From positions 1,550,001 through 1,614,000 of the forward strand of contig NW_027271581.1 of the NCBI RefSeq assembly GCF_040938485.1: DNA of 64,000 nucleotides, read 5' to 3'. Position 1 is the first letter of the stretch; every line of letters starts with the position of its first letter. Under the pieces are notes generated by a model. It saw only the letters and a program-made list of their open reading frames with translations, was not told the origin of the DNA and searched no databases. The position numbers and the translations under genes are program-made. Below are positions 10,601 through 64,000 of the stretch, one piece after another. This stretch comes from Diadema antillarum. Lineage: Eukaryota.

Positions 10601-13600
10601 GGAGACATGCAACTGAGAAAATGCAGTTTCTCCATGAATAGTGGGTATGTAAGGATGTCAAAGGGCCAGAGCCTGATCATAAGATCTCAGCTGTTAGGAG
10701 GGTGTCTATCGATATGGTGTAATGAGCTAATGGAGACAAGAAGGAGCTGTGAATGGCAGAGCATAATAGATTAGAAGAATTGTCACAAGAGGGAAGTGCA
10801 GTAGTGTAAGTTTGCACACACTTCATCAGGAACCATACATCATGTATGTGGAGCATCAATCTTACAGTGAGTAATGGTGATATGTGGGATGAGGAGAGGG
10901 AAGTTTGGGAGGTCAAATGCAGTTTTGATACTTGGAACAATCCAAACTAAAAATTGTTGATGAGGAAACATACCAAGTGTTATGTCTATCTAGTAATTAC
11001 TTCATAATGGTGGCCTATGGTGACTATCTGTTTATTCTACACAAAAGTTAGACTCAGTGCATTTGAATAAGAACATGACTTTAAAGTTTCTTTTTTTTTG
11101 TGGGAGAATTGCTAAATGTTTTTTTTTTTCATCACTCCATTTCTTAACAGTTGGCTTGGTGCATTCAATTATTCCAAGTTACACATCATTACAGTGATGA
11201 ACTAGAAAAGCACTCTGAGAGCGCAGACCTCCACCACGCAGCTACTTTCCACCGGTGATCTTGCTCTTCCCAAAGAGATTTGTCTCCTCTCCATCACTGG
11301 GGAAGAGCTCTTTGGGCTCTTCCATAGAGAGCAGTGATTTCCACCCACAGGTATACATGCTGAAAATCGCCTGATTTTCCAATATTATATAGAAGCCTTT
11401 GGTACATCATAAACCCTCAGCTGCGCGGCGCGCCTCGCCCTGGCAGAAACAAGAGCATGCACTTTAGTGCGCATTTAAAAACCTCAAAAATGCGCAGCTT
11501 GAACTCCCAAGTTCATTGACCCTACCTGTCAAAATATCAAAAATCATGAATTCCCCCAAAATTCTCAGATCACTAAAATCATTTGTTACTTGTGTCATTC
11601 TCAACCTTTCCTGTAAGTTTCATCCAAATCTGTTAACTTTTGCACATGGACAAACAAACCAATGGTAACAAAAATAACCTCCTCCTTGGCGGAGGTAGTT
11701 AAGTGCAGAATCTACCCTTTCAGATCATGAAATTATTCCACATAAAATATATCTTATCTGGTGACTTTTCAGTGGCTTTTAGTGAAGCAGAGTCATATAC
11801 AGTGGACTCCCATTATAACACAATCCTCAGGACCAGCAGTTTTCTTTCACTATATCGAAATATATTATAACTGAACAAATAAACAATGAAAAGATATAGA
11901 ACGAATAATGTTGGGACATGAATTTTTACTCTGTTGTAACCAATTTTTGTTATAACTGTGTTCGTTATAATGGGAGTGCACTGTATGTAGCTAACCATAG
12001 TACACTGCTGCCTCAAAATTCTCTGAAGATGCTATATTTGGCAATCAGTGATTAAAAGTCAAAGAGGACAAACATTTGATCCTGTTGAAATATACTTTAC
12101 TTCTTCTTGTATTTTAAACAATTTCTATCTTTCAACTCAAAATCATTAACCTTGTATGGAAGACACACAAAGTATATCACTTCAATATCTATATTTCTGG
12201 CAGTGTACCTTCAAGACTTTGCATGACTTCTTCAGATGTGGGTGAAGGGGCAATCTGTTGGTGCCTGGCCGCACCAAGGCTGTCGTTGAGGATGGCACTG
12301 GCAGTCCCGTCCACCTGATCCTCAGCGATGCTGATGGTAGGATGCCGTCTGGTGCGATGCCGGTGGTAGTTACTGATGTGGCAGATCATCGCATCCTCGT
12401 CAAGCTCCAAGAGAAAGTGGCGAACACCTAGAGAAAAGTGAGCGTAATTCTGATAGCTTGCTGTCCACCCAGACTTTCTACATGAAATAAATTTGCGTTC
12501 TCTGTGTATCCTTTAAGATGTGAGCAAAATTAATTATGGTAGTGTGTAATTCTGCTGTAGTAAACAGTACAAATTGTACATCTCTCAAAATTTTGAAGTC
12601 ATCTTTTATTGTGGTTTATGTGTCAAAATAATAAAACTGATATACAACATTTCTAATGTTAACATTTACAATCATAATGACAACAAAAAGTAAACAAAAC
12701 AAAACAAAACAAAACAAAACAATGCGTGAACCAGTATTATACTCAAGGAGTAATTAGATATCACAGCAGTCTTCAACCTGCTAATTCAAAATGGCAGACC
12801 AATATACCGGTACTTGTACGGTTCATGTAATAAGCAATGACTGCATTCTAAATCTCATTTGAATTCTACAGAGAGTTTTGAAGACTGAGATTTTGACATT
12901 AAAAAAAAAAGGTACTATGAAACAAATGTACTCACTGATTGTGTGGGTGCGGCACACAGAAAGACAAGCCACAGCCACCAGCATGTTCCAGAGGAAAGAA
13001 AATGCAGTTAAACCCACTAGACAAGGGTACTGAATGAAGCAGATCCAGGGTGAAATGGCGACTGAGTGACATGTGTCGTCATGGAAAAGGTGCCTGTTCT
13101 CATAGTTGTACAGACCAATAAAGGTCAGTCCAAGGAAGCCTATCACAACAGCGGAATTCATCTTCAGAAAGGTCTTGGTGTGAAGGCGAACGCTCTGCAC
13201 AAACAGGCGGTTGGTGAAGAGTCGGAAGGCAAGGTTGTTTGCGTAGACAGTCACTGAGCAGAACATGAGCGCCATCAGGATATTGACAGTGCCGTTGAGC
13301 GAATCAAATGTTGTATTCTGCGAGACGATGTCGCTGACAGTGTACCACGTGCTGGCAATGACGTAGCCTACAGTGCTCAAGAGAGTGAGAAGGTATAGGA
13401 ACAGGGCAAATATGGGCCTGTCCTTCGGGTGTGTTTTGATACCGAGGGATTTGGCAATGATGTACCAGAGCCATGGGGGGAGGGGACGAGACTGCTTTAT
13501 CCTGACAGGGCGGGCCTCCTGCTCTCCAAGGGACTGAAAGCCCTGGGCCTGGATAGAACCTGGTCGGAGGACCACCTGGGGTTGGCCACGGAAGCAGTCC

Positions 13601-24100: not shown

Positions 24101-25262
24101 TAGGTGTGTCTTTAGAATCCCTTTTTCATTTCTGAAAAACCTTGTCCACACTCTTCACTTTCAACTCTAATAACTTTTGAAAGGATAGGGCTACTGCTTT
24201 GAAAGTTGACATTAATTATGGACAGAATGTGTTAATGAGGCATGCTTAATTTCACTTTAATCTGATAATCTCTTCATTGTTTTTACTCTGGTGGTTTACT
24301 TCCTGTTTTTTGTCCCATTCACTGCACAGCCAGCACGGTTTGGTAAGGATTAAGCGCTTGAATAGACACTGTACTTCAGAGCCTCTTTTCTCAGTTCACA
24401 CTTTTCCTGAGTTTGTGCTTTCTTTCCAATATTTAGATAGGTTAGGAGAGTCCATTTGATTTAAGTTATACATCATTTTAAAGCTTAAAGTCTGCTCTTT
24501 CGGAATATGGTCTTAACTAAAAATTCATGTCTGGCGACTTTTTGTTTGTTTTGAGGTGCAGAGTCACAAATGCCTATTAAAGTTGAAAGTCTTTTCAAGT
24601 CCTCTTCTCTTTATATACTGATCTTATCCTTAATTCATAAGTCAAATTTTCTCTAATTCAAAGCCAGATTTCTTGACTGTATCTCCCCATTTAAAAGTGT
24701 TGTGTGATCACTGAACTTTGAACCGCTTAGCCATGCACAGCATTGTATTAGGTGAAGCATAATATGGGATTTTACAAATTATTTGCCTTTTTACACAGTC
24801 TCATTTGTTCATCTTTGCTTGCATTCCAAAAGGGCAACTGATTGCAATCCTCACCATAATGGCACAAACAGTATTCTTATTTCTTTCAGTGAGCTTCATT
24901 TGTATCCATTGAGCAATATCAAGTCATCACTTGATTTCCCTCCCCCGCCCCCCCCCCCCCCCCCCCCCCGAGTAGTGTTCACAGTCCTTTCTGATGAAGA
25001 AATACATGTAGATTGTTTGTTGTTTATATTGCCAGTAAGACTCCATGACATAACTAAGATCTCATATCCACAGCTATTGAGTGAACGTTGATAGAGTCCT
25101 CAGCCAGATTGTTTGATGTTTGATGTTGAACAGCTCATGGACCCTCACTTCAGTGTGGAAGAGATTCCAAGAGGAGAACTGCATCCAGTGTACAACAGCG
25201 AGGAAATTCACGTCAAGCAGTACAGGAGGAAAACAGATGTATCGGAGGACACTCTGAGCTGA
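18174..25262 (+). CDS. VCPKMT: Protein-lysine methyltransferase METTL21D / VCP lysine methyltransferase
   Basis: Exons 18174-18412, 21594-21704, 22616-22688, 23650-23769 and 25134-25262, all GT-AG and phase-consistent, give 223 aa. Motifs: DVGCVVWDAALVLAKYL, LELGAGTG, VILTDL, DLILMSDCVYYPE, CCYEERTIG. AATAAA at 25322-25327. Confidence 0.93.
18589..19217. mobile_element. Compound foldback element with 64-bp TIRs, two internal hairpins and a TTAGGG tract
   Basis: TIRs 18589-18652 and 19154-19217 differ at 2 positions. Inner inverted arms 18675-18716 / 18874-18913 enclose (TTAGGG)n at 18754-18852. A ~100-bp-arm palindrome spans 18949-19163. Confidence 0.85.
18754..18852 (+). repeat. Interstitial telomeric-type (TTAGGG)n tract
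   Basis: Ten perfect TTAGGG units plus variants (TTGGGG, TTAGGA, TTAGGT, ATAGGG). Confidence 0.9.
19253..19641. mobile_element. TTAA-flanked MITE (AGGGACTGTACA family), copy 2
   Basis: TTAA|AGGGACTGTACAGCACTGGTTGAGA ... TCTCAACCAAAAC..TTGTATCCCT|TTAA. Confidence 0.8.
19745..19993. repeat. MITE-like segment built from TTCGGA(A/T)TAACGAAC sub-repeats in both orientations
   Basis: GTTATTCCGAAG repeats on the left and TTCGGAATAACGAAC repeats on the right. Confidence 0.65.
20261..21512 (-). mobile_element. Tc1/mariner-type MITE interrupted by an AWWT-target MITE
   Basis: TA|TAGTGCACTCCCGTTACAAC ... GTTATAATGGGAGTGCACTG|TA. Reverse-colinear with 16318-16858 once 20727-21413 is removed. Confidence 0.88.
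20727..21413 (+). mobile_element. ~690-bp MITE with ATAT TSD (Sola1-like), family A
   Basis: ATAT|GTGACCGTGCACCTCAAAACGAACATAAAGTCGC ... GCGACTTTTTGTTTGTTTTGAGGTGCACTGTCAC|ATAT. Confidence 0.92.
21803..21966. mobile_element. Small MITE (GGCCCGTTGCATAAAAC termini)
   Basis: GCCCGTTGCATAAAAC ... GTTTTATGCAACAGGGC with internal TTACCG/CGGTAA repeats. Confidence 0.7.
23879..24567 (+). mobile_element. ~690-bp MITE with AAAT TSD (Sola1-like), family A
   Basis: AAAT|GTGACCGTGCACC ... GGTGCAGAGTCAC|AAAT. Nearly identical to 20727-21413. Confidence 0.92.
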
Positions 25263-32869: not shown

Positions 32870-35797
32870 TACCTCAAACGAATAAATCAAAAGGTATATG
32901 ATTATCTGAGTATGGTCATGATGGTAGAGAGTAGTGCAACAGATTACTTAGTATATCGTCACCCACTTAGGGTGACAGACTCTACGTCGTCTGTTATTGA
33001 TCATATTTATACTAATGTGTATAGTCATACAATTCATTCAGGTGTCATTGAGACAGATGTGTCAGATCATTTTTCCAATTTTTTTGTCTTTTTTGAAAAT
33101 GGGAATAAAAATACGAATGCTTTTGTGCGGAAATTTGCCCGATCCTACAAGTCATTTAATGCCCAGTCATTTCACGAGGATCTATATAGGAAAAATTGAA
33201 TGGGCACATGTATCTAGATACGAAAATGTAAACACAGCTTATAAAATCTTTCATGATATGTTTGAGAAAATATGTGATAAGCATGCCCCTACATGTATCC
33301 CAGAAAAAGAACAGCCCAAAGAAACCTTGGATCTCATCAGCGATTCTTAAATCCATCAAGAAGAAGCACATCTTTAATATACAAAAACTATAGGTCATCA
33401 AATTTTAGTGACGAATACGGAAACAAGTATAAAAGGTATCGAAACACTTTGGTAACAGTTATTGAAAATGCAAAGAGATTGTATTATTGCAATTCTTTTA
33501 ATCGTAACAAAAGTAACATGACAAAGACCTGGGATATCATTAATGAGTTAATTGGTAGAAAGGTTAAAGATAAGCATTTGGATATAGAAGAGTTAACTAT
33601 TAATCAAGGTGGGATTGAAAAAAAGTTATATCTTCTAACAATGAAATAGCCCAAGAACTCAATAACTACTTTGTCACTGTTGGGTCAACAATTGGCAGAA
33701 CGAATACCAAATGGGCCTCCTAATAGTTGTTTTCAAGATTATTTGGGTGTAAGAAATACTAAGTCTTTGGCTTGGAAACCTATAAGAGAAGAAGAAATTA
33801 TGGATATTATATGCTCTTGATGATACAAAGTCTCGTGGTTATGATAATTTGTCAATAAGATTGATGAAGGACGCAGCACAATATATATTGTTTCCCCATT
33901 GACTTATATCTTTAATCTGTCATTAGAAATGGGCTAATTCCCTGATGCACTTAAGATTACAAAAGTGACGCCTTTGTTCAAGAAAGGTTCGAAAGATGAC
34001 CCAGGTAATTACAGACTTATTTCAGTTCTGCCAGTAATTGCAAAAATTTTCGAGAAATTAGTCAATGGTCGTCTAATGGACTTTTTAGAGTCCACTAAAA
34101 TTTTGTACAGACACCAGTATGGATTTCGTAAGACATACAGTACAAAATTATCATTAATCAATTTGTTTAATACATTAATACACTCAAATGATAAAGGTGA
34201 AATAACCCTTGGTATATAGATTTCAAAAAGACGTTTGACACAAGCAATCATCGCATCCTTTCAGCGAAATTAGAATATTATGGCATAAGAGGCATTGTGT
34301 TGCAGTGGTTCCTAAATTATCTCTCAAACCGATCGCAGGTATTGTGCTACAAGAATGAAATATCCAGTAGTGGAACGATCACATGTGGAGTACCACAAGG
34401 ATCAGTGCTGGGACCCACACTGTTCCTATTATACATCAATGATTTACCTACCTCATCGAACTATTTTCAGTTCAGACTATTCGCTGACGATTCAAACATT
34501 TTTCATACATTTCCCAAAGGTACAAAAGAAATTGATATGAATGACGTAAATAGAAAATTGAATGAGGTACAGGAATGGTGTATTGTAAATAAATTAACTA
34601 TTAATTTGAAGAAAACAATGATTATTAAAGGACCAAGACAACCAATTGCAATTAAAGGTGTGTTAACAGACTCTGAAACGGTTATAGAAAGAGTACATGT
34701 AGCATCTTTTGTAGGAATCCAAATTAATGAGACCTTGATGTGGAAGGATCAGATTCAGTATATCAACAAATGCATTAGGCGCAAAATTGGCTTAATTTTT
34801 AAGTTAAGATACTTTATTCCAAGGCATGTTCTCATGCTTTTATAAAAATTCTTTATACAATCACATATACTTTTGGGAATTGAAGTATGGGGAAGTACCT
34901 ACAGAAGCCACTTAAATTGTATATTTTTAGCACAAAAAATGGCCGTGAGAGCAATTACATTTCCCCCTTAAGAACAAGTTCTAGGCCATTATTCACCAGT
35001 CTAGGGGTGTTAGATGTTTTTGACCTGCATAAGCTTGCAGTGTCAACCTTTGTATATGATCTACACAAGGCACATTTACCACATTCTGTAACGCAATATT
35101 ATGAGCCAATGAATCATGCATACAGGACTAGAGGCAAAGATCATTCCATGCTTTGACTTCCGAAATGTAAAACGACACATGGTACATTTTCTATATCTTT
35201 TGTCGGGTCAAAGTTTTGGAATAGTTTGCCCAAAAATGTTCAAGAGGGTAGAACAAGATCTTCATTTCGAAGAAACCTAAAAAATCAATTGTTAAATGAA
35301 GTTTAGTGATGAAAAGAATATTCAGTGTTTAGTTTAATGTACTTTTATAGTACAGTTACTTTAAAAGAGTAGACCTTGCAATAAGCAGCTTAAATATACA
35401 TGTAGCTATAACGGGAGAACCATTCTCGACTAGCACTTGTGCTAACTTTTGGTTCCCCCTTTAACAACATTATCTTCTGTTTTTCTATATCTTTTTCTAT
35501 ATTTTTTTTCAGAACCTTTGTCTATGCGTATGTCTACATTACATACTTATTCATACTCTTTGCCTTTTTAGTGATAAATGTATCACGACGAAACTAAATC
35601 TATCATACCACATGTATTCTTATGTAAGATAAATATAAGTATGTAAAATATATGCTTGCATAGCTGTAAGAACCTTGTACAAAATCATTGTATTCTCATT
35701 AAAAAAAAAATCATGTTATTGTATCTTACCCTATGGAATTTCATGTTATCATGTTATCATATTCACATGTATGTTGTAAATAAACTCAACTCAACTC
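32870..35797 (+). mobile_element. 5'-truncated, decayed L2/Crack/CR1-group LINE
   Basis: APE fragment (SSVIDHIYTN, TDVSDH) and RT fragments (PLFKKGSKDDPGNYRLISVLPV, GVPQGSVLGPTLFLLYINDL, LFADD) in several frames. Ends in an AATAAA(CTCAA)n tail at ~35779-35797. Start is approximate. Confidence 0.9.
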
Positions 35798-53747: not shown

Positions 53748-56368
53748 GCACTGTAGGCACTGTCCCGACCGCGATCGGATGGAAAGATGAAAACACGCGT
53801 TTGCCGTGCATGTTTGAAGGAACACCGCAAGCTGTGTACTGGGCGAAGGAGAACATGACGAATCCAGGACAGACGCTGACCTTAGCTTCATTCTTTGAGC
53901 AGAAATTTACGAGCAAGATAGAAAGGTTCCACATGGACGAGGATTTCGGCCTCATAATTACCAATCTAGAAGTGCCAGATGAGGGTTACTACCAATGCCA
54001 AGTGGTGCTTCTAGATTTTAGTGATTTCTCAAATTCAACCTTTCTTACCGTGAATGGTGCGTTCAGAGTACAGTATAAAAGTGTTATTATAATCAGATTT
54101 ATGATAAAGCGATATCATGCTAACACAATTAATCTGTTTGAAAAAAAGGAAAATGACTTCAGCAACTATTATATGACCCTCCTTGGCCAATCAATTTGAC
54201 GCAATCTCTTGGTCTTTTTTTTAAAACTCAAGCATAACCCTGGAGCCTGATGTACGTTCTTAGTACTTTCTAAATGTCTTTCCTGTAAAAAGTGCTCATT
54301 ATGTTGAGACATGTCAGTGAAGGTCAAGACTGGTTTCACTGGTTGGTTATGAATATAATGAGTCAATTATTGTAATCAGTAAACACAATCAAATCACTAC
54401 TAGACTATCAAGGGATTATGCGACCATTTACAACGGTCAGTTGTGTTTGATCTTTGTTAATCAAAATGGGTGTTTTGATCTCAATAAAAGAAGGATAAAT
54501 GGTTCACTATTTTAAAGCATTCGGCCGATGATGCAGATATCCTGTGCCTGAGTTGGTATGGTGTGGTATGATATGGTACGGTTTATTAGATAAAAGATAC
54601 TCTCGCTGCCAAGCGGCTGAATTGCAACATGTGCTCACAAAATAATAATACAATACACAGTGTCTGTGAATACAATACACAGTATCTGTGAACACAAATG
54701 AAGATCATATTCGTTTTAAAATGCTAAAACAAATACCTACACTAATTTTATCTATTTCATGGGGGTTGAAACAATCACTATATCTAAGTGCGCATGGATA
54801 TGTCAGGTGCGTAACTTGGTACCAATTATGTCCACGCAAAACGAAATAGGTGTTGTTATTCTAGTTCATTTAATATTCTAAAACTTTTTTTTTTGTCGAA
54901 TAAATCTCCTTAAGTTAAGTGCCCATGCCTGCCCAAGTGCACTCGGGACTAGTCTTCGATGAGTTTTATTGATATCGTCACGGTTGTGAGTTTTACTGGC
55001 TTTATTATTCTTAATGCTGTCTTCGTTAATGTAGTCTAAATAATTATTGCAATTCTCATTAAAATTACTCTCAGCCATGGCTAAGGAGCATATCATCGAA
55101 CAATGTGTCGAAGAGGTTCATGGTTTGAGTCCTTGCACTATTCAAACGTCGAAGGAAGCCCCAACTTTTCATCTTGACTGTCGGCTCACGGGTTTCAAGC
55201 CAAACGTGTCGCTCGTGTGGAGCAAATCGGGTCGAGCACTGCCTCCAGTGAGGTCCAGCCAGCACACTTCTCCAGACGGGACTTTCGAGAGATTTGAGAC
55301 AATAACTGTTACAGCCAGTCACGACACGGAACAAAACTTCACCTGTACGACATCAGGTCATTCCGTGAACGGAACCTCGTCAAAGGTTATCACTGTTTTA
55401 CCTTTGAAAGGTGGGCAGTTAAGAAATATTTACTTCTATTAGTCACGTTAGTACTTAATAATGATTATACTAAGAATCTTTTCTTTATTGTACATTATAC
55501 GATACATTATCATACTGTTAGTACAATACTGTACTATAAAATACTATGCAACAATACTTACATGCATATAACATGATTAATATAATCATATAAATATATG
55601 TGTAGGCCTATATATATGGTATACTTAATCACGTATATTGTATATATATCAACATAGACAAACATATCAATACATTATATGAATATGATATAACATTGTA
55701 TGCTACATACGTGTGTGTTGGCAAGACTGTGCAATTGCTTATCAGGTTTATGTTTTCTTTTCCTTGTTTTTTTTTCCCTTGCACAGAGTGAGGTTAAAGA
55801 CAACTGAATAATAGTTTTCTAAAAGGTAGTGTTGTCAATTCTATTTCTGACATTAAAAGTGCACTTCTGGTAAATAATGTTATCATTCAAAATCATAAAA
55901 ACCATATTTTAGACACATGGATACTCGTTGTTCCAAAAGGGAATTTATCTATGTAACGTCATCTATCTGAATGTGATATTGGTTTAACCGTTTCTTGCTT
56001 AAGTTCGTTCAAATCTACAATTTTATATCATATCATAGCAACAAGATCACACCAGCTCATTGCATATAATTATAGGCTTACATTATAGTGCATCAACTTG
56101 CATTTGACTCTCTCGACAGGATACAGAAATTAAGACATTTGAAAATAGTAATGTGACATTTGATTGTGTGAACAATGCATATGCTTGTCTGTGTGGAAAA
56201 AAAAAGAAAAAAATCTGTTTATGACTAATTACTTGTCCCCCCCCCCCTCGAAAAAAGAAATAACAACTTTGCCTAAGGTACAACAGAGGAAAACTATAAA
56301 GAAATGCAAATGCAGCGATCTAGATTGAAATGTGCCATTTCAGCAAAAGAAATACAAAATATGTATAC

Positions 56369-56429
<61 letters not shown>

Positions 56430-59400
56430 CATACATATGTTGAAGAAGAGAAGAAAAAACCCAGAAAATTAGCAATTTCAATTCTCAAACGGGATTATAA
56501 TGGTTCTGCATGGGTTTAGAAATCATATAAATATCATAATTTATATTCGCAGTTAAAATATGTGACCCTGCACCTCAAAACAAACAAAAAGTCGCCAGAC
56601 ATGAATTTTTAGTTAAGACCATATTCTGAAAGAGCAGACTTTAAGCTTTAAAATGATGTATAACTCAAATCAAATGAACTCTCCTAACCTATCTAAATAT
56701 TGGAAAGAAAGCACAAACTCAGGAAAAGTGTGAACTGAGAAAAGACGCTCTGAAGTACAGTGTCTATTCAAGCGCTTAATCTTTACCAAACCGTGCTGGC
56801 TGTGCGATGAATGGGACAAAAAAACAGGAAGTAAACCACCAGATTAACAACAATAAAGGGATTATCAGATTAGACTGAAATTAAGCATGCCTCATTAACA
56901 CATTCTGTCCATAATTAATGCCAACTTTCAAAGCAGTAGCCCTATCCTTTCAAGAGTTATTAGAGTCGAAAGTGAAGAGTGTGGACAAGATTTTTTCAGA
57001 AATGAAAAAGGGATTCTAAAGACACACCTAATCACACTATTCTACCAAAAATGTTCGAGATAAACTGCTAAAAAAACACACTTTCCTGCCCGTTTTATGT
57101 TACCAAATTTTAGCATAATGTAACAGAAGACCCGCTCTTTCAGAAAATATGAAAAAGTCAAGTTCGGCTAGGTTGACCCATTTCACTAATTTTCAGTCAT
57201 CACGCAAAATCAGTGTGTGCGACTTTATGTTCGCTTTGAGGTGCACGGTCACATATGTATATCATAATACCTTATCGGTTTTTCCACACATTATTTCTGT
57301 GTGTTGCTTACCTTTCAATTTGTAAATGCTCAGTTTACCTGTCCGTTTATGAGATTCCTTCCTCTTTCATGTACTTTAACCCTTCACTATACACAACGGG
57401 ATTGGATATTGCTTTAATGGGGGATTCTTCATCCTAAAAATTACAAGTTCATTAATATCAATCGTTTATTGTGGTCTTTGTTACGTTTACAGAAGAAAAG
57501 GACAGTCCATCAGGTCAAAACAGAATGGGGCTCGGAATCGGACTGACGTTGTTCATTCTGGTCCTAGTAATAATAGTACTCTTTCTGGTAACTGGAAAGC
57601 TTTTGCAGAAGTACAGACCAGAAATCATGCCTGAAGGTAAATAATTATGTCATATTTGAGAATATGCTATGTCAATTTGCTTGTTTCTTTTTTTTAGTTT
57701 TCTTTTTTTATACTTCATTGTGCTTTTGCCGATTTCGAGATTTCAGGTGAATTACTCTTAATTTCTTTGTAAAATAGGTGGTATGCATTTACCTGCATAA
57801 TCATTTCTATTTTTTTAATTGGCAGAATCCTTATATTAATTTGTTATTTCTGTACAAAGTTCGGACCCTTTTTCACTGAGACCAATGTATCATTCTTCAT
57901 AGTGTCTTTATCACATCCTTAAGAATAGCGCCGAGTAGTATAGTTGTCGTACAATATCTCGACTGTGACGTCATAAAGGCGTCATATCATCTGTATTCAA
58001 ACAACTATTAAGCATCACAAATCGACGAAATTTTGTTTAAAAAAAGATAAGTCATGGGTTAACTTCTGCGAGATTGTGGTCCGCACACGGGAAAATTAAA
58101 ATGGTAAACACAAGCTCTTATCAAACCATATGCACGGCCTTGTTGAAGAACAGCCTGTGACTGAAACAAGTGACCGAGTGGAAATGAAATAAATGAATGA
58201 ATGAATGAATGATTTAAGTTTCAATCCCCTGTCACATCGTAAACATAATAGAATGGCCTAGAACGGGGATCTTGTAAGACCTACAAAACGAGTCCATCGA
58301 CCTCAAAACAGAGCCCCGTTTTATCAAAAGATATAATCGATTATGAATTTCTTTACCACACATGCTGCTATAGACTAACCATGGAAATCAATGCAAATCA
58401 ATTACGTAATATGTCTTTGCATGACTTTGAACTGTACTTATGATGTCATATTCTGTGCATTTTTATGTCAGAACGTGGGAAGTGTAACTTACTGCAACAT
58501 TTGACTATACATTTTGTACACTTAACGATGTTCATTATTTGAATTGTATCTTCGTGTATCTGGATTCAATTTCTCGCAATTTGATCAGATTAAGTTTCAA
58601 ATTTTGAAGTATAATTGACGGCATTGTTGTAAGAATCCTTTATGAAACTTAAAGAGTGCATAGTCGACATCTGGCCAGAAAATACTCCTCTGTACAAGTC
58701 TGAGGGAAATCAATTATTTCAGACATCAAAGTATACCTATTCTTTAACCAAAATCAAATTAAAAAAGTATCGGTAGTCTCATGTTAAGACGTCATTTTTC
58801 TTATCTTATCTATGCCCAAAGTAGCATTACACTGTAGGAGCCTATACGAGCTGACACACTTTGCAAGAGACTGTTCCTTCAATGAGCTACGGTGCGGATG
58901 ATGATATAGGGACTACTGGTTGATTCTTCATAGTGACTACTCCAATAGCATCATTTTGTCATAGATTTAATCTAAAGTATTTGATAACATAACTCTTGGT
59001 CAGTTACAGGGTGTTTTCTTGTCACAATGTATTTCATATGTGTAAGAGGGGTGTACTGATAAAGACAAAAAAAAACAAAAACAAAAGAAAACATACAAAA
59101 GTTTTGCGACGCATGTTATGATGGTTTCCAGAAACCATTAAACTTAAACCGGATTCCATTCAGATCTGTTAACATTGCCCATGGCTGTACTGAATATTCT
59201 CTGTTATACTATGTAGCCTCGAATTATTGCAAGATTGCACAGTCCCCAAGCGCTCCTAAAACAAACAAACAATCAAACAAACTAAAAGAATTTTGACTAT
59301 TTCATATCGTGTTATTTCTCTTTCTCTACATTTCTGACAAACTGTATAGGATTGACATGGATTCCATGCTGGAAGAAGCCATCAGAGAAGGACATTCCAC

Positions 59401-59439
59401 TCATAAAGCGGAGGGGTAATTTGACATCATGTACCGTCT

Positions 59440-59474
<35 letters not shown>

Positions 59475-61187
59475 ACAAAAACCACACACACACACAAAAC
59501 AACAACAACAACAACAAATATAAATACATAAAGTACAAAAACCTCGGGAATAATAACTTTAAAAATAATGTATCAATCCATGCATGGAACCATTACTTAT
59601 TACCCACATCTTACAGCAAACACCATCCGATTTGCTTCAGCGGTTAAAGAAAAATGGGGATCTTTGTAGAGTATGTCAGGAATCACTTCTCTCCGAGTTC
59701 TGCCCATTGTGTTCACACATTGATATGAAGTTCCAAGAGCTGCATCCAATTTGCTAAGCTTGGAAGAATCACAGACCAACATGCATGACATGCTTTACAA
59801 TGATCCACATTTCTCTGTGAGCACTTGACCAAATTGAATGGGATATTCTGCAAAATAAAGGTGAGATGTTATATTTTGAGACCCTGAAATAACATTTGGA
59901 CAGCTTAACAATATTGACAGTTATCAATGCGGAAATCCGATTGTATTTCTTTTTTTTGGGGGGGGGGGGGGAGGGGGACATATACTGTATATTGCACGAG
60001 GGCGTGTGTGGGCAATAGACATGCTGTATTTTTCTCTTTATCTCAAGATAAAAAATATCGAAACTAATTACTCCAGTCCAGGTGCTCATAGAATGTTTAC
60101 AATAGCATCGTAATTAATCAGGTTTTCTGTTTAACTGCACTTTTTGTTTATTATTTTTAAGCTATCTAGTATGCATCATTTTAGTGTTAAGACAAGTATC
60201 TCAGCTTCCACGGAGTCTGACAAAAATATCGTAACGTGATTTTACATAAGATCGCAGAGAAGATCTCACAGCTTGTTAGATGTTTGTATACTCTTTAAAA
60301 TGTACACAAGTTTGTGTTCATGAAACTAATCTAATTAATACCAAGCCATCAAAGTTCATTTGCCTTTCTCTATTCTCTATTCTTAATCCAATGGATTTTA
60401 TTTCAATCAAGTCAAATCGAAAGTTCAGAGAGTAGAATATAAGCTGTCGTGAAGGTGGTTGGTTTTGTCATATTATAATGTATTTAGTTCCCTGTGAGTA
60501 CATGATTGATACTATACACCAAATTACCAAACTGTTCTACTAATTTCCTTTAATAGTACGTATCTTTTCAATAATTATTGCTTTCAGATCTGTGAGATTT
60601 AATGTCTTGTAGACAAAGACGGACCACATAAATCCAGTAAGCTGTATTAGTCCTTTTTATGTTTATTTTTTTTTTTTTTACATAGAACGACTTCGAGAGG
60701 AGCTTCGAGAAAAAATTCGTAGCTACAAACCGGGAAGTGCCAGGGAAATTAACCTTGGCGACCTGAAGCTAGTCAACATCAATCTATTCGGGCAGATGAG
60801 CGCAGGAAAATCGGCCTTCATTAACTCTCTCTTCTTTGCTTTTAAAGGTAAGTCTTCATCAATTATTTGTGTTGTATGGAGCTGTCGTTGATGAATTCAT
60901 GCACGATCATTCCTCTTCAATTCATAAGTACATTGTATTTATCATAAGGTAAGATGTTGAGATAATTCATGATATTGTATGGAAGAATAGTCCTGAGCAT
61001 GCCTATGTGTTACGTTTCCAGCGAAACATTGTTTTTCCAGCGAAACATTGTTTTTCCAGCGAAAAATATTTCTACAACACATACCGTTAATCAATACACA
61101 TTCCTCTTTGTGCAAAGCAATTCTCTCCGAACATTTCGAACTGATTTGTTTGTTATAAGCCTGCAAAAAAAGCACCGGCATAGCCAA

Positions 61188-61225
<38 letters not shown>

Positions 61226-63391
61226 GATGGAGGCGGTCGTCCCCCCCCCCCTCAAAAAAAGAAATTGACCGGGGATTTGTAAGGCGGAAAAGAAGGAAAA
61301 ATTGCTTGTATACTGTATGCAAGTGCATGAAGCGGATCTCCCTTTCAACCTTTTATCAAGTAAGATCATAATTTCTTCAATATTTCACTCAGAGTGTGTG
61401 CCAGGTCGGTGAATTTCAATTCTAAAATTGCAAAATCTCTATCGCTAGGGAAGGGGATACCCCCTCGCAAACCCGTTCTCTCTGTACCCCTTTCCATAGC
61501 CTTAATACACTTGTGAGGTTTACAAAAACATCTAAATAATTCTGAGTGCACAAGACTTATCACTTATATTACAAAACTCAAAAGTTCCCTCATGCAAAAG
61601 GGGTAGGCTCTATATGCCACCTTCCCAATTCTCGGTCCCCTCTATTAGACTTATAGACTTAGTACACTTTGGGGAATGACAGTTTCCGAATTTCACACAA
61701 AAAGTGTACTTAAGATCGCTTTATTTCAATTCTAAAAAGTAAAAGCTCCGTCGAGTGGGAGGGGCATCCCCCTCCCACACCCCCTCTACCTCACTACAAT
61801 AGACTTTGTACATACGCAGAGATGATTGCACACGTGGAATAAGAGCTAAATTCTGTGATTGAGCTATTAACACTTCCCTGAATAAACCCTAATTATTTTC
61901 ATTATTTTTGTGTGAATGAGGGGGGGGGGGGAGAAAAAAGCACCAAAAAGCACCAAAAGTTTGCACCAGATCGCTTAATATCAGGCCTGAAAATGCAAAA
62001 TCACCTTCGTGTAGAAGGAAAGATACCCCTTATCTACACTCTCGTGTGCATGCTTTTTCTGTTTGATTGCTTAGTAGCGATTATGATATTCCTTGTAAAT
62101 ATTAATACAAGTAGTTTATTCAAATGATACAATTTTATAGGCAACTGTATTTTTCAATAGTAATCTACTTCAAAACATACTATTAACTTAAACAAGTGGG
62201 ACTGTTTCATGCAAAAACATGCATCAAATTGCACCTTTTACAACATCAAAAGGCAAAAAGTTCTGACCGTGGGGGGACACCCCGCTCTCTCGCATACTAG
62301 CCGCCCCCTCCCCATCCAAGATCAAATCCTGGCTACGCCGATGAGGAGCCGTCAGTAATGCTTTCAACGCACCCGTCAGGCGGAATCACGCTTAAAAGTA
62401 AAAGACAAAAGGTTTTTACAGGCGAACTAAGAAATGCATTTGCAGGTTCTAAGTACCCACGGATGTCGAATACTGATTATTTGACTAATGAGAAGAGAGT
62501 TGTGGTTTGTATATAATTCATATATGCTCATATATATGTATATAATCAAAAGCGCATCAGTTCGTGAGTCCCTTGAATACGTACAAACGATTTTTTTTTT
62601 GGTCCAACTTGAGCATTATCTACGTCACTTCACCAGAAATTTCATGTGAATAATATTTATCTCTGTTGTAAGAATTTAAAGGGCAATCGAGAATATGAAT
62701 GATAATTGTTACTCGGACCAGGAAGAGAAACACTTTAGATATGGCTTACATGCAATAATGAAATACTTATGATTTTTTTTTTTTTTTTGTGTGATGATGT
62801 TTCAGTGGTTATTGTATAGTCATGACCAACGGCCATTGCATGCACTCTCCTGGCCACATGCACGTTCATTGTATTGACTTTCTTTCCCTTTGGCCCATCA
62901 TGCATTACGAATTTAGATAGATTGTTTCATGAACATACAGCTTTCTAAATTGTTATTTCTCTGTCTTCTCATGTTATTGTTTCACTACTTTCATTGTTAG
63001 CTAATTTTTCACCTAGTCCTACTTATATTTCCTTCATTATTCAAAGTTTGTTTGTTTCCGTTGTGGGTATGATTGTTAGCAATTAAAGGGTGTCAACAAG
63101 TGGCCGCAATTACCTGTTTCTTTGTCTTTCAAAAGAAGTCTGTTATTCCGATCACTAACTCGTCTAGAATATCTTGCTGACATATTAACCATCAATGTTT
63201 GTTGTTTGAACGTGCCTTTCCTACAGGAGGAATCTTTGACAATGTAGCAGCTGAAGGAACTGCTGAGAGCGGGGGAGGTCACACCAAACAGCGTGACCAT
63301 CACCCGTTGACTGACTACATCACAGTGCAGGACAACCGGGGAATGCAGAACTTTGACTTAGATGAACTAGACCGGATTAAAGATGAAATCA
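53748..63391 (+). CDS. Type I membrane protein: IgV + IgC-like + TM + cytoplasmic IFI44-like P-loop NTPase domain (5' exon not found, 3' exons beyond window)
   Basis: GT-AG exons, all phase 1-1 and open: 53748-54056 (LPC..VYW..DEGYYQC), 55075-55410 (LDCRLTGFKPNVSLVW..FTC), 57493-57636 (TM MGLGIGLTLFILVLVIIVLFLVTG), 59350-59415, 60686-60847 (LREKIRSYKP..NINLFGQMSAGKSAFINSL) and 63227-63391 (GGHT..VQDNRGM). Confidence 0.82.
56372..56428. repeat. (TA)n microsatellite
   Basis: Direct reading. Confidence 0.9.
56562..57252 (-). mobile_element. ~690-bp MITE with ATAT TSD (Sola1-like), family A, intronic
   Basis: ATAT|GTGACCCTGCACCTCAAAAC ... TTTGAGGTGCACGGTCAC|ATAT. Reverse complement of 23879-24567. 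Confidence 0.92.
58100..58212 (+). mobile_element. Probable 3' tail of a LINE/SINE
   Basis: Short stem-loop (CAGCC-TGT-GACTG) then AATAAA and a (TGAA)n tail. Confidence 0.4.
61173..62343. mobile_element. MITE-like element with GGC(A/G)TAGCCA termini and G/C runs
   Basis: CACCGGCATAGCCAAGGGGG ... CCTGGCTACGCCGATG inverted ends. No clear TSD. Confidence 0.55.
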
Positions 63392-64000
63392 GTAAGTTCT
63401 ACGTCCAACGTCATATTCTTACTCAAGGGGAACACGAGGATGTAGATAGGAGGAGAAAGGGGAGCGATTAATGAAGTTATTTTTTCTCCCCTTTCCATCG
63501 TCATTTCTAGAATTAGTTTCCTTATCACGACATTAACATTGTTTTTAAACCACTGTCTATGATTCAGTTGTACTTAGTAATAAGATACTAGCAATCGAAG
63601 CGTTATATTTTTAGAGTTCATGTATGTCACACTGTGGATTATTAAAAAAAAAAGTTTTCATGCTTTTCAACCTTTTTACCATAGGTGTCAGCTGATACTT
63701 TACCATTTGCCCTGCTGGGAGAATCAATTAAAGCATGTATATAGGGCTTGTACATACCGTCTATGCAATTTTAAGATAATCCTCATGAGAGTAGATGCGT
63801 GCAATTAAGATGATGACTGGCGGGGGAGGGAATATAGCGAATGTTACACCCGAAGGGTTTGAAATGCTATTGAGGGAGGTTATAAGTCCTAAGACTTAGT
63901 CGAAGGACTTATATCCTCCCGCACAAAAGTCATCATCTGTTTATTATATGGGTTAGTCAAATATGTCAACGTCAGCCACCAGCAAAACACACTCGATCGC

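Follow-up and report, generated by a model that had tools for sequence, protein, structure and literature searches.

Few interferon-stimulated genes are induced as strongly as IFI44 and IFI44L, whose biochemical role is not settled; in invertebrates, IFI44-like genes have undergone a great expansion, and we know of no function for them there. The butyrophilins and B7 proteins follow a plan of an IgV domain, an IgC domain and a single transmembrane helix. Here we describe a gene of the sea urchin Diadema antillarum that probably unites these two systems in one chain. It lies in a window of 64 kb (the whole stretch of DNA that was analysed, at about positions 1550001–1614000 of contig JBFRCO010000693.1, assembly GCA_040938485.1), and we favour its interpretation as a single gene for a type I membrane glycoprotein of 588 residues, with a signal peptide, an IgV and an IgC domain, an acidic stalk, a transmembrane helix, a basic linker containing Cys, a G domain of the IFI44 type and a polybasic, CaaX-like tail.

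With IFI44 and IFI44L the urchin protein shares the fold of the G domain, both the helix that precedes the P-loop and the long one at the C-terminus included, a G1 motif of the form GxxxxGKS, a G3 motif DxxG that is followed by a hydrophobic residue and not by a catalytic Gln, and a presumed link to innate immunity. It differs from them in having no TLDc domain and in not being soluble, as its G domain would form the tail of a type I Ig receptor; one urchin subfamily, moreover, ends in a CaaX-like box, and identity in the structural alignment is about 19–20%.

With butyrophilins and B7 proteins it shares the plan and fold of the IgV-IgC ectodomain with a single transmembrane helix (TM-scores of 0.68–0.71 to BTN3A1, B7-H6 and PD-L1), matches to C2-set_2 (CD80-like) and C2-set_3 (BTN3A2-like), and the placing of one Ig domain on each phase-1 exon. 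In contrast to butyrophilins, its output is a P-loop G domain and not B30.2/PRYSPRY, and since nectins and CD166 match equally well at the same low identity (15–19%), the likeness amounts to a shared plan and not to a demonstrated orthology. The first-pass annotation of this DNA, made from the sequence alone, had proposed a butyrophilin-like architecture with another output; this description stands for the ectodomain plan and fold, and it implies no orthology.

A third group, comprising GIMAPs, Toc34/159 and the prenylated GBPs, likewise has a membrane-held G domain that is probably activated by dimerisation. GIMAP and Toc proteins are the next-best structural neighbours after IFI44, and GBP1, 2 and 5 have a CaaX-type C-terminus, as the urchin protein does. 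Unlike the latter, these proteins are attached to organelles from the cytosolic side, by a tail anchor or a lipid anchor, and lack an extracellular ligand-binding domain, and their TM-scores stay below 0.5.

A description of any Ig-transmembrane-IFI44 protein was not found in the searchable full-text literature (subscription journals being outside its coverage). Public gene predictions for three urchin species nevertheless contain the combination without a name for it: RefSeq and UniProt enter the protein as “uncharacterized protein”, and “butyrophilin-like protein 1” is the name given to one fragment. The earlier view that the architecture is undescribed thus holds for the literature covered, whereas the databases already contain it.

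Gene structure

The six plus-strand exons recognised by the first-pass annotation at 53748–63391 proved to be exact. They are all flanked by AG acceptors and GT donors, all introns are in phase 1 (as seen by three-frame translation and inspection of the junctions), and the joined exons give a coding sequence of 1182 nt without a stop. E1 (53748–54056), assigned by Pfam, splice sites and an AlphaFold model, encodes the IgV (V-set) domain, and E2 (55075–55410), assigned by Pfam, an IgC domain resembling the C2-set of CD80 and butyrophilins. E3 (57493–57636) encodes the acidic stalk, the single transmembrane helix GLGIGLTLFILVLVIIVLFLVTG and a basic stop-transfer stretch, while the short E4 (59350–59415) supplies the juxtamembrane linker LTWIPCWKKPSEKDIPLIKRR, in which a Cys stands beside basic residues (CWKK). 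E5 (60686–60847) encodes the helix with which the G domain begins, RLREELREKIRSYKPGS, together with the G1 P-loop GQMSAGKS, and E6 (63227–63391) the G2 Thr (GGGHT) and the G3 motif DNRG, followed by a hydrophobic Met. E1 to E5 are phase 1-1 exons, and E6 ends in the phase-1 donor A/GTAAGT.

This exon model was not complete, as a first exon had been missed and the gene extends past the window. A scan for an ATG, a hydrophobic stretch and a phase-1 donor identified exon 0 (42272–42359, plus strand), 11.4 kb upstream of E1, which provides the ATG and the signal peptide MNENRNLPVFTQRLILATGLLVICFSEVH and ends in the phase-1 donor G/GTAAGT. The RefSeq model P0036 takes it as its first coding exon, and in D. 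setosum its 88-nt open reading frame (ORF), ATG and GTAAGT donor align without gaps while both flanks have indels. At the other end the gene is cut by the window border after E6, and exons 7–9 follow on the same contig, 0.35–4.5 kb past position 64000 (14048–14135, 17003–17070 and 17848–18188 in the coordinates of locus L004, to which window positions 50300–64000 correspond at 100% identity). In our reading the gene has ten coding exons, seven of them inside the window. The ten exons of the window haplotype join to an ORF of 588 codons that has no internal stop and ends in SKSKDDSWCSVM; with the full ORF intact, a reading as pseudogene is rejected.

A further candidate exon (53192–53266, plus strand), which is translated N-terminally in the partial D. 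setosum model P0024, was rejected as probably not coding, because none of its acceptors, which are in phase 0 or 2, fits the phase-1 exon 0, and because its conservation is that of the intron background. No second copy of the gene was detected in the 64-kb window by tBLASTn with all family members as queries.

Transcript models and the case for a single gene

Contig JBFRCO010000664.1 (locus L001) is collinear with the window contig at 97–99.6% identity, with indels, and looks like its other haplotype. On this allelic contig RefSeq has a single model, XP_071503124.1 (P0016, 538 aa), which starts at an internal Met of E1 and extends to exon 9; over 373 aa it agrees with the spliced window model at 99.2% identity, and its joins are the same. 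On the window's own contig RefSeq gives two models. P0036 (352 aa) comprises the signal peptide and E1–E4 and then reads through the E4 donor into the start of intron 4 (59416–59531, plus strand), a C33/(CA)n/(CAA)n microsatellite, up to a stop at 59531. P0020 (142 aa) begins with a 10-nt mini-exon encoding “MYTK” (60300–60309, plus strand), continues with E5–E7 and reads through the E7 donor into an immediate TGA.

Several points weigh against a single gene. RefSeq annotates two genes on the window's own contig, the support for the proposed E4–E5 join comes entirely from gene predictions and comparative conservation, and as all exons are of phase 1-1, the fact that they join in frame is no evidence for a single transcript. 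We nevertheless consider it very likely that E1–E6 belong, together with exon 0 and exons 7–9, to one gene, which may have a short isoform besides. The one-gene reading becomes much more likely because each of the split models runs into an intron at its end, and because P0020 stops before G4 and the rest of the G domain. The claim of one receptor gene has thus gained from the fused models in three species; with RefSeq splitting the locus on the window contig, it is not proven.

An unlikely variant is that one gene makes two products, the full receptor-GTPase and a short, decoy-like protein with the two Ig domains and the transmembrane helix, the latter by retention of intron 4 or early polyadenylation. 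Short- and long-tailed isoforms are common among Ig receptors, the S. purpuratus loci have several isoforms (X2, X3), and RefSeq presumably had some alignment support when it built the 352-aa model. However, the tail read from the retained intron is not conserved, and the variant is compatible with a single receptor gene and not opposed to it.

Two adjacent genes, one for an Ig-Ig-transmembrane protein with a short tail (P0036) and one for a small P-loop protein (P0020), with the fused models being annotation chimeras, are a similarly improbable explanation. It would agree with the two gene calls on JBFRCO010000693.1 and with the proper signal peptide and the stop of P0036, and phase 1-1 exons would keep automated chimeras in frame. 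Against this, the last 37 residues of P0036 are derived from the poly-C/CA microsatellite, and this read-through tail differs in length, frame and sequence across both haplotigs and D. setosum, while the GT donor that it ignores is kept in 3 out of 3. P0020 fares no better, as it starts with the 10-nt mini-exon, takes its stop from reading past the exon-7 donor and breaks off behind the third strand region, so that G4 and the C-terminal half are missing and it could not fold as a G domain, although exons 8 and 9 are intact downstream. The “MYTK” mini-exon is probably no real start; its conservation concerns 5 critical bases against a background identity of 84% and is hence uninformative. Fusion with the same joins, on the other hand, recurs in at least nine models (P0016 and, at 28–93% identity, P0001, P0017, P0018, P0019, P0024, P0012, P0014 and P0021), as well as in S. 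purpuratus, and within these the Ig and G domains diverge in parallel and form the same subfamilies. In P0012 less than 1 kb separates the transmembrane exon from the P-loop exon, and E5 has a strong acceptor preceded by a polypyrimidine tract of 14 T, as is typical for an internal exon.

The microsatellite (window about 59442–59520; a C33 run, then (CA)n and (CAA)n) starts 26 nt after the E4 donor, is polymorphic in length between the haplotigs and coincides with the break between the RefSeq models. The window haplotype carries, in addition to this long poly-C tract, two extra repeat insertions of ~700 bp (in introns 2 and 7), and we suspect that the insertions and the tract together caused the model break of the RefSeq pipeline at this position.

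Ectodomain and membrane topology

The two Ig domains of the first-pass annotation are borne out by Pfam, with a V-set match for E1 (5e-10, 40 bits; cut-off 26) and a C2-set_2 match for E2 (4e-6, 27.2 bits; cut-off 21), for which the butyrophilin-type C2-set_3 is weaker (9e-5); in some paralogues the corresponding IgC domain scores as C1-set. An AlphaFold model of the ectodomain (P0036 residues 30–245; pLDDT 91), compared as one rigid two-domain body, matches nectin-1, nectin-3, CD166, B7-H6, PD-L1, BTN3A1 and bovine butyrophilin with TM-scores of 0.68–0.73. No Pfam SPRY or PRY match was found in the exons or paralogues.

Hydrophobic windows (Kyte-Doolittle, 19 residues, >1.6) occur exclusively at the signal peptide and in E3, so that the sole internal hydrophobic segment is the transmembrane helix already recognised from the sequence, with the Cys/basic juxtamembrane stretch following on E4. 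All five N-glycosylation sequons lie N-terminal of this helix. The juxtamembrane motif of E4 recurs in paralogues and in sister genes with a NACHT domain (CGWNPCWRRP).

The 588-aa ORF ends in a polybasic stretch followed by the CaaX-like sequence WCSVM. Such endings after a basic stretch (WCSVM, WCTVI, WCNVM) are encoded by exon 9 in one subfamily, consisting of P0016, P0017, P0018, P0019 and P0024; the comparison of C-termini also covered P0041. The S. purpuratus homologue ends in CCCS, and P0012, P0014 and P0021 have no CaaX-like ending.

The cytoplasmic domain

All motifs named in the first-pass annotation (DEGYYQC, CRLTGFKP, LREKIRSYKP, GQMSAGKS, GGHT and DNRG) are present in the spliced exons. 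Within the family the G1 motif, the G2 Thr and the D, R and G of G3 are invariant, as are the G, K and S of the P-loop. Naming of the G domain by Pfam on single exons failed, as E5 gave weak matches to P-loop GTPases (Dynamin_N, MMR_HSR1, IIGP) that were all below threshold. The assignment to IFI44, which had been made from a sequence segment, was evaluated at the level of structure.

In a Foldseek search of the AlphaFold models of Swiss-Prot with a model of the G domain (P0016 residues 262–520, from a 10-sequence alignment; pLDDT 78, pTM 0.80), ranks 1–5 were taken by IFI44 of mouse, chimpanzee and human and IFI44L of human and mouse, with E-values of 1.8e-10 to 8.6e-10 and TM-scores (by query) of 0.66–0.71. 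The alignments extend over model residues 2–248 and about residues 163–437 of the matches, which is their whole post-TLDc part, and include the N-terminal helix and the long C-terminal helix. Next came a Dictyostelium vWA protein (3e-9), while Toc, EngB, GIMAP, Ras-like and EF-Tu proteins followed at 3e-6 or weaker with TM-scores below 0.5. GIMAP4 and GIMAP7 matched in fold at 2e-5 to 4e-5 (TM-scores 0.39–0.42), and no Pfam AIG1 match was found in the exons or paralogues. Fold clusters of the AlphaFold Database (AFDB) contain entries named “interferon-induced protein 44-like” from scallop, oyster, fish and a haptophyte, and in addition proteins from amphioxus, Nematostella, protists and plants in which a G domain is combined with various N-terminal domains. 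In a protein-language-model atlas, chordate IFI44-like clusters appear at 0.96–0.97.

The motifs agree with this placement. A DxxG followed by a hydrophobic residue, without a catalytic Gln, is the pattern described for IFI44 and IFI44L (bioRxiv 10.1101/2020.02.24.963900), and both the G1 pattern (GQMSAGKS) and this form of G3 (DNRGM) are encoded in the window. A TLDc domain is absent, with no Pfam TLD match in the window exons or any paralogue; nor is one present in many of the AFDB and atlas proteins that bear the name IFI44-like. We regard an IFI44-type cytoplasmic domain as supported by predicted fold and motifs, both sides of the structural comparison being predicted models.

Some observations count against this assignment or against the mechanism proposed below. 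No significant IFI44 match was obtained at the sequence level, so that the assignment derives from predicted folds at 19–20% identity and from a language-model neighbour list. At the G4 position the family has (V/I)(I/V)THxD/E, in which the Asp is variable, and specificity for guanine is accordingly uncertain as judged from the sequences. The CaaX box is confined to one subfamily. Human IFI44, finally, kept its antiviral effect when G1 was deleted (bioRxiv 10.1101/2020.02.24.963900), so that even the archetype is not an established GTP switch, and scaffold functions that do not need GTP are possible.

Word-seeded profile searches reached sea urchin proteins only. Exon 5 as phmmer query (53 aa) retrieved Ig-transmembrane-GTPase proteins and was too short to go further; word-seeded searches with the G domain alone gave Diadema proteins only, and S. 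purpuratus came up solely with a profile of the full-length family. Against PDB sequences, a cytoplasmic-domain profile gave nothing significant, with Lsg1, Irgb10 and septin-9 as marginal matches (E about 0.05). That the domain is a divergent member of another TRAFAC family (GIMAP/AIG1, Toc, septin or IRG), with AlphaFold mimicking IFI44, could draw on these marginal matches, on GIMAP7 as best match among solved structures (3e-5) and on Pfam seeing only MMR_HSR1 or Dynamin_N at the P-loop, but is most improbable, as IFI44 and IFI44L lead by four orders of magnitude (TM-scores 0.66–0.71 vs 0.39–0.49) with alignments spanning both terminal helices, the AFDB clusters (from molluscs, fish and algae) and the language-model neighbours (at 0.96) are IFI44-like, and neither AIG1 nor Septin exceeds the Pfam threshold.

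Relatives within sea urchins

Proteins of the same architecture, for which the first reading had proposed a search, exist both as Diadema paralogues and in a second urchin lineage. S. purpuratus XP_011669205.1 (593 aa) forms one collinear alignment that takes in IgV, the full G domain and all that lies between them (34% identity, E 6e-77), and the architecture is thus older than the split of the two lineages. At 11.8 kb downstream of the gene, and in the same orientation, lies the paralogue P0018, whose exons are arranged alike, and on the allelic contig P0012 is found about 45 kb downstream of P0016. These data show a tandem cluster of paralogues and deep conservation of the architecture within sea urchins.

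For E5 and E6 the dN/dS ratio is 0.12 in comparison with D. setosum, which we count among the points in favour of one gene. Synonymous divergence between the window gene and the syntenic D. setosum copy (L002) is 0.04 in the Ig exons and 0.31 in the G-domain exons. In a second D. setosum copy (P0024) the relation is reversed, with a G domain that is 99% identical and Ig domains that are only 88–92% identical. To judge from these sequences, the pattern suggests that the gene is a mosaic or has undergone gene conversion, the break lying between exons 4 and 5.

Searches with the profile of the full-length family yielded six further Diadema models (P0042 and P0046–P0050) in which the cassette of IgV, IgC, transmembrane helix and CW(K/R)(K/R)P is followed by a NACHT domain (Pfam 1e-21 to 1e-23). 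Their ectodomains are 44–50% identical to that of the gene described here, they occur in the same genomes, and they likewise have a P-loop NTPase as cytoplasmic output; in place of the IFI44-type G domain, however, this is a NACHT domain of the STAND class, and these proteins, too, are predictions only. They would be transmembrane NLR-like receptors. The model P0049 is without the transmembrane exon. The cassette up to the juxtamembrane segment appears to be a phase-1 module that is joined to NACHT in the sister genes. Taken together, the sisters with IFI44-type and NACHT tails suggest that echinoid receptors arise by exchange of the NTPase module behind a common cassette.

Possible mechanism and its implications

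In the mechanism that we propose, the signal peptide would be cleaved and the protein would adopt type I topology, with the glycosylated Ig domains outside and the basic residues after the transmembrane helix inside. The ectodomain, being butyrophilin/B7/nectin-like, would bind an extracellular ligand. The G domain would be pinned to the inner leaflet by the transmembrane helix on one side, perhaps with palmitoylation of the juxtamembrane Cys, and by a farnesylated C-terminus on the other; a CaaX box with Met at X, as in WCSVM, predicts farnesylation. Held in this way, the G domain would act as a nucleotide-dependent switch. As it has no catalytic Gln after DxxG, like its structural kin (IFI44, then Toc, GIMAP and septin), it would be activated by dimerisation; IFI44-type domains and their structural neighbours, which lack this Gln, work, where known, via nucleotide-dependent dimerisation. 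With activation of this type, ligand-induced clustering of ectodomains would be the simplest coupling between outside and inside, in that clustered ectodomains may pair the G domains and so start or stop a cytoplasmic, probably immune, signal.

We put forward, as a tentative and possibly too general extension, that a so far undescribed class of surface sensors made of a single chain exists in sea urchins, in which an exchangeable Ig-transmembrane cassette is wired to an oligomerising NTPase, either a membrane-pinned IFI44-type G domain or NACHT. The cassette may have spread by shuffling of phase-1 exons and recombination between paralogues. If true, an extracellular ligand would directly trigger a nucleotide-driven assembly that other animals start only from the cytosol.

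For the known G-domain family this would be a new domain architecture, and for the IgV-IgC-transmembrane plan of butyrophilins and B7 proteins a new type of output. An IFI44-type domain that is membrane-bound and wired to a receptor would have a definite topology and a definite input, along with a switch model that can be tested. D. antillarum has had mass die-offs, which gives clustered, fast-evolving candidates for immune receptors a practical interest in this species.

Other features of the window

Three ORFs in the window belong to retroelements (90–2543 and 34297–34845 on the plus strand, 44613–45242 on the minus strand), two of them with RVT_1 matches (1.6e-4 and 4e-13) and the minus-strand ORF with no Pfam match. 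A 260-aa ORF on the minus strand (12823–13605) has several hydrophobic segments and no Pfam match; an exon of a multi-pass membrane protein is one reading of it, chance another.

A dispersed repeat of ~700 bp is present in the window at 20723–21418, 23873–24568 and 56555–57260, the last of these in intron 2, and once more beyond it at 14863–15567 of L004, the copies being 95–96% alike. The copy in intron 2 and the second intronic copy are absent from the allelic contig, indicating that both insertions are recent and polymorphic.

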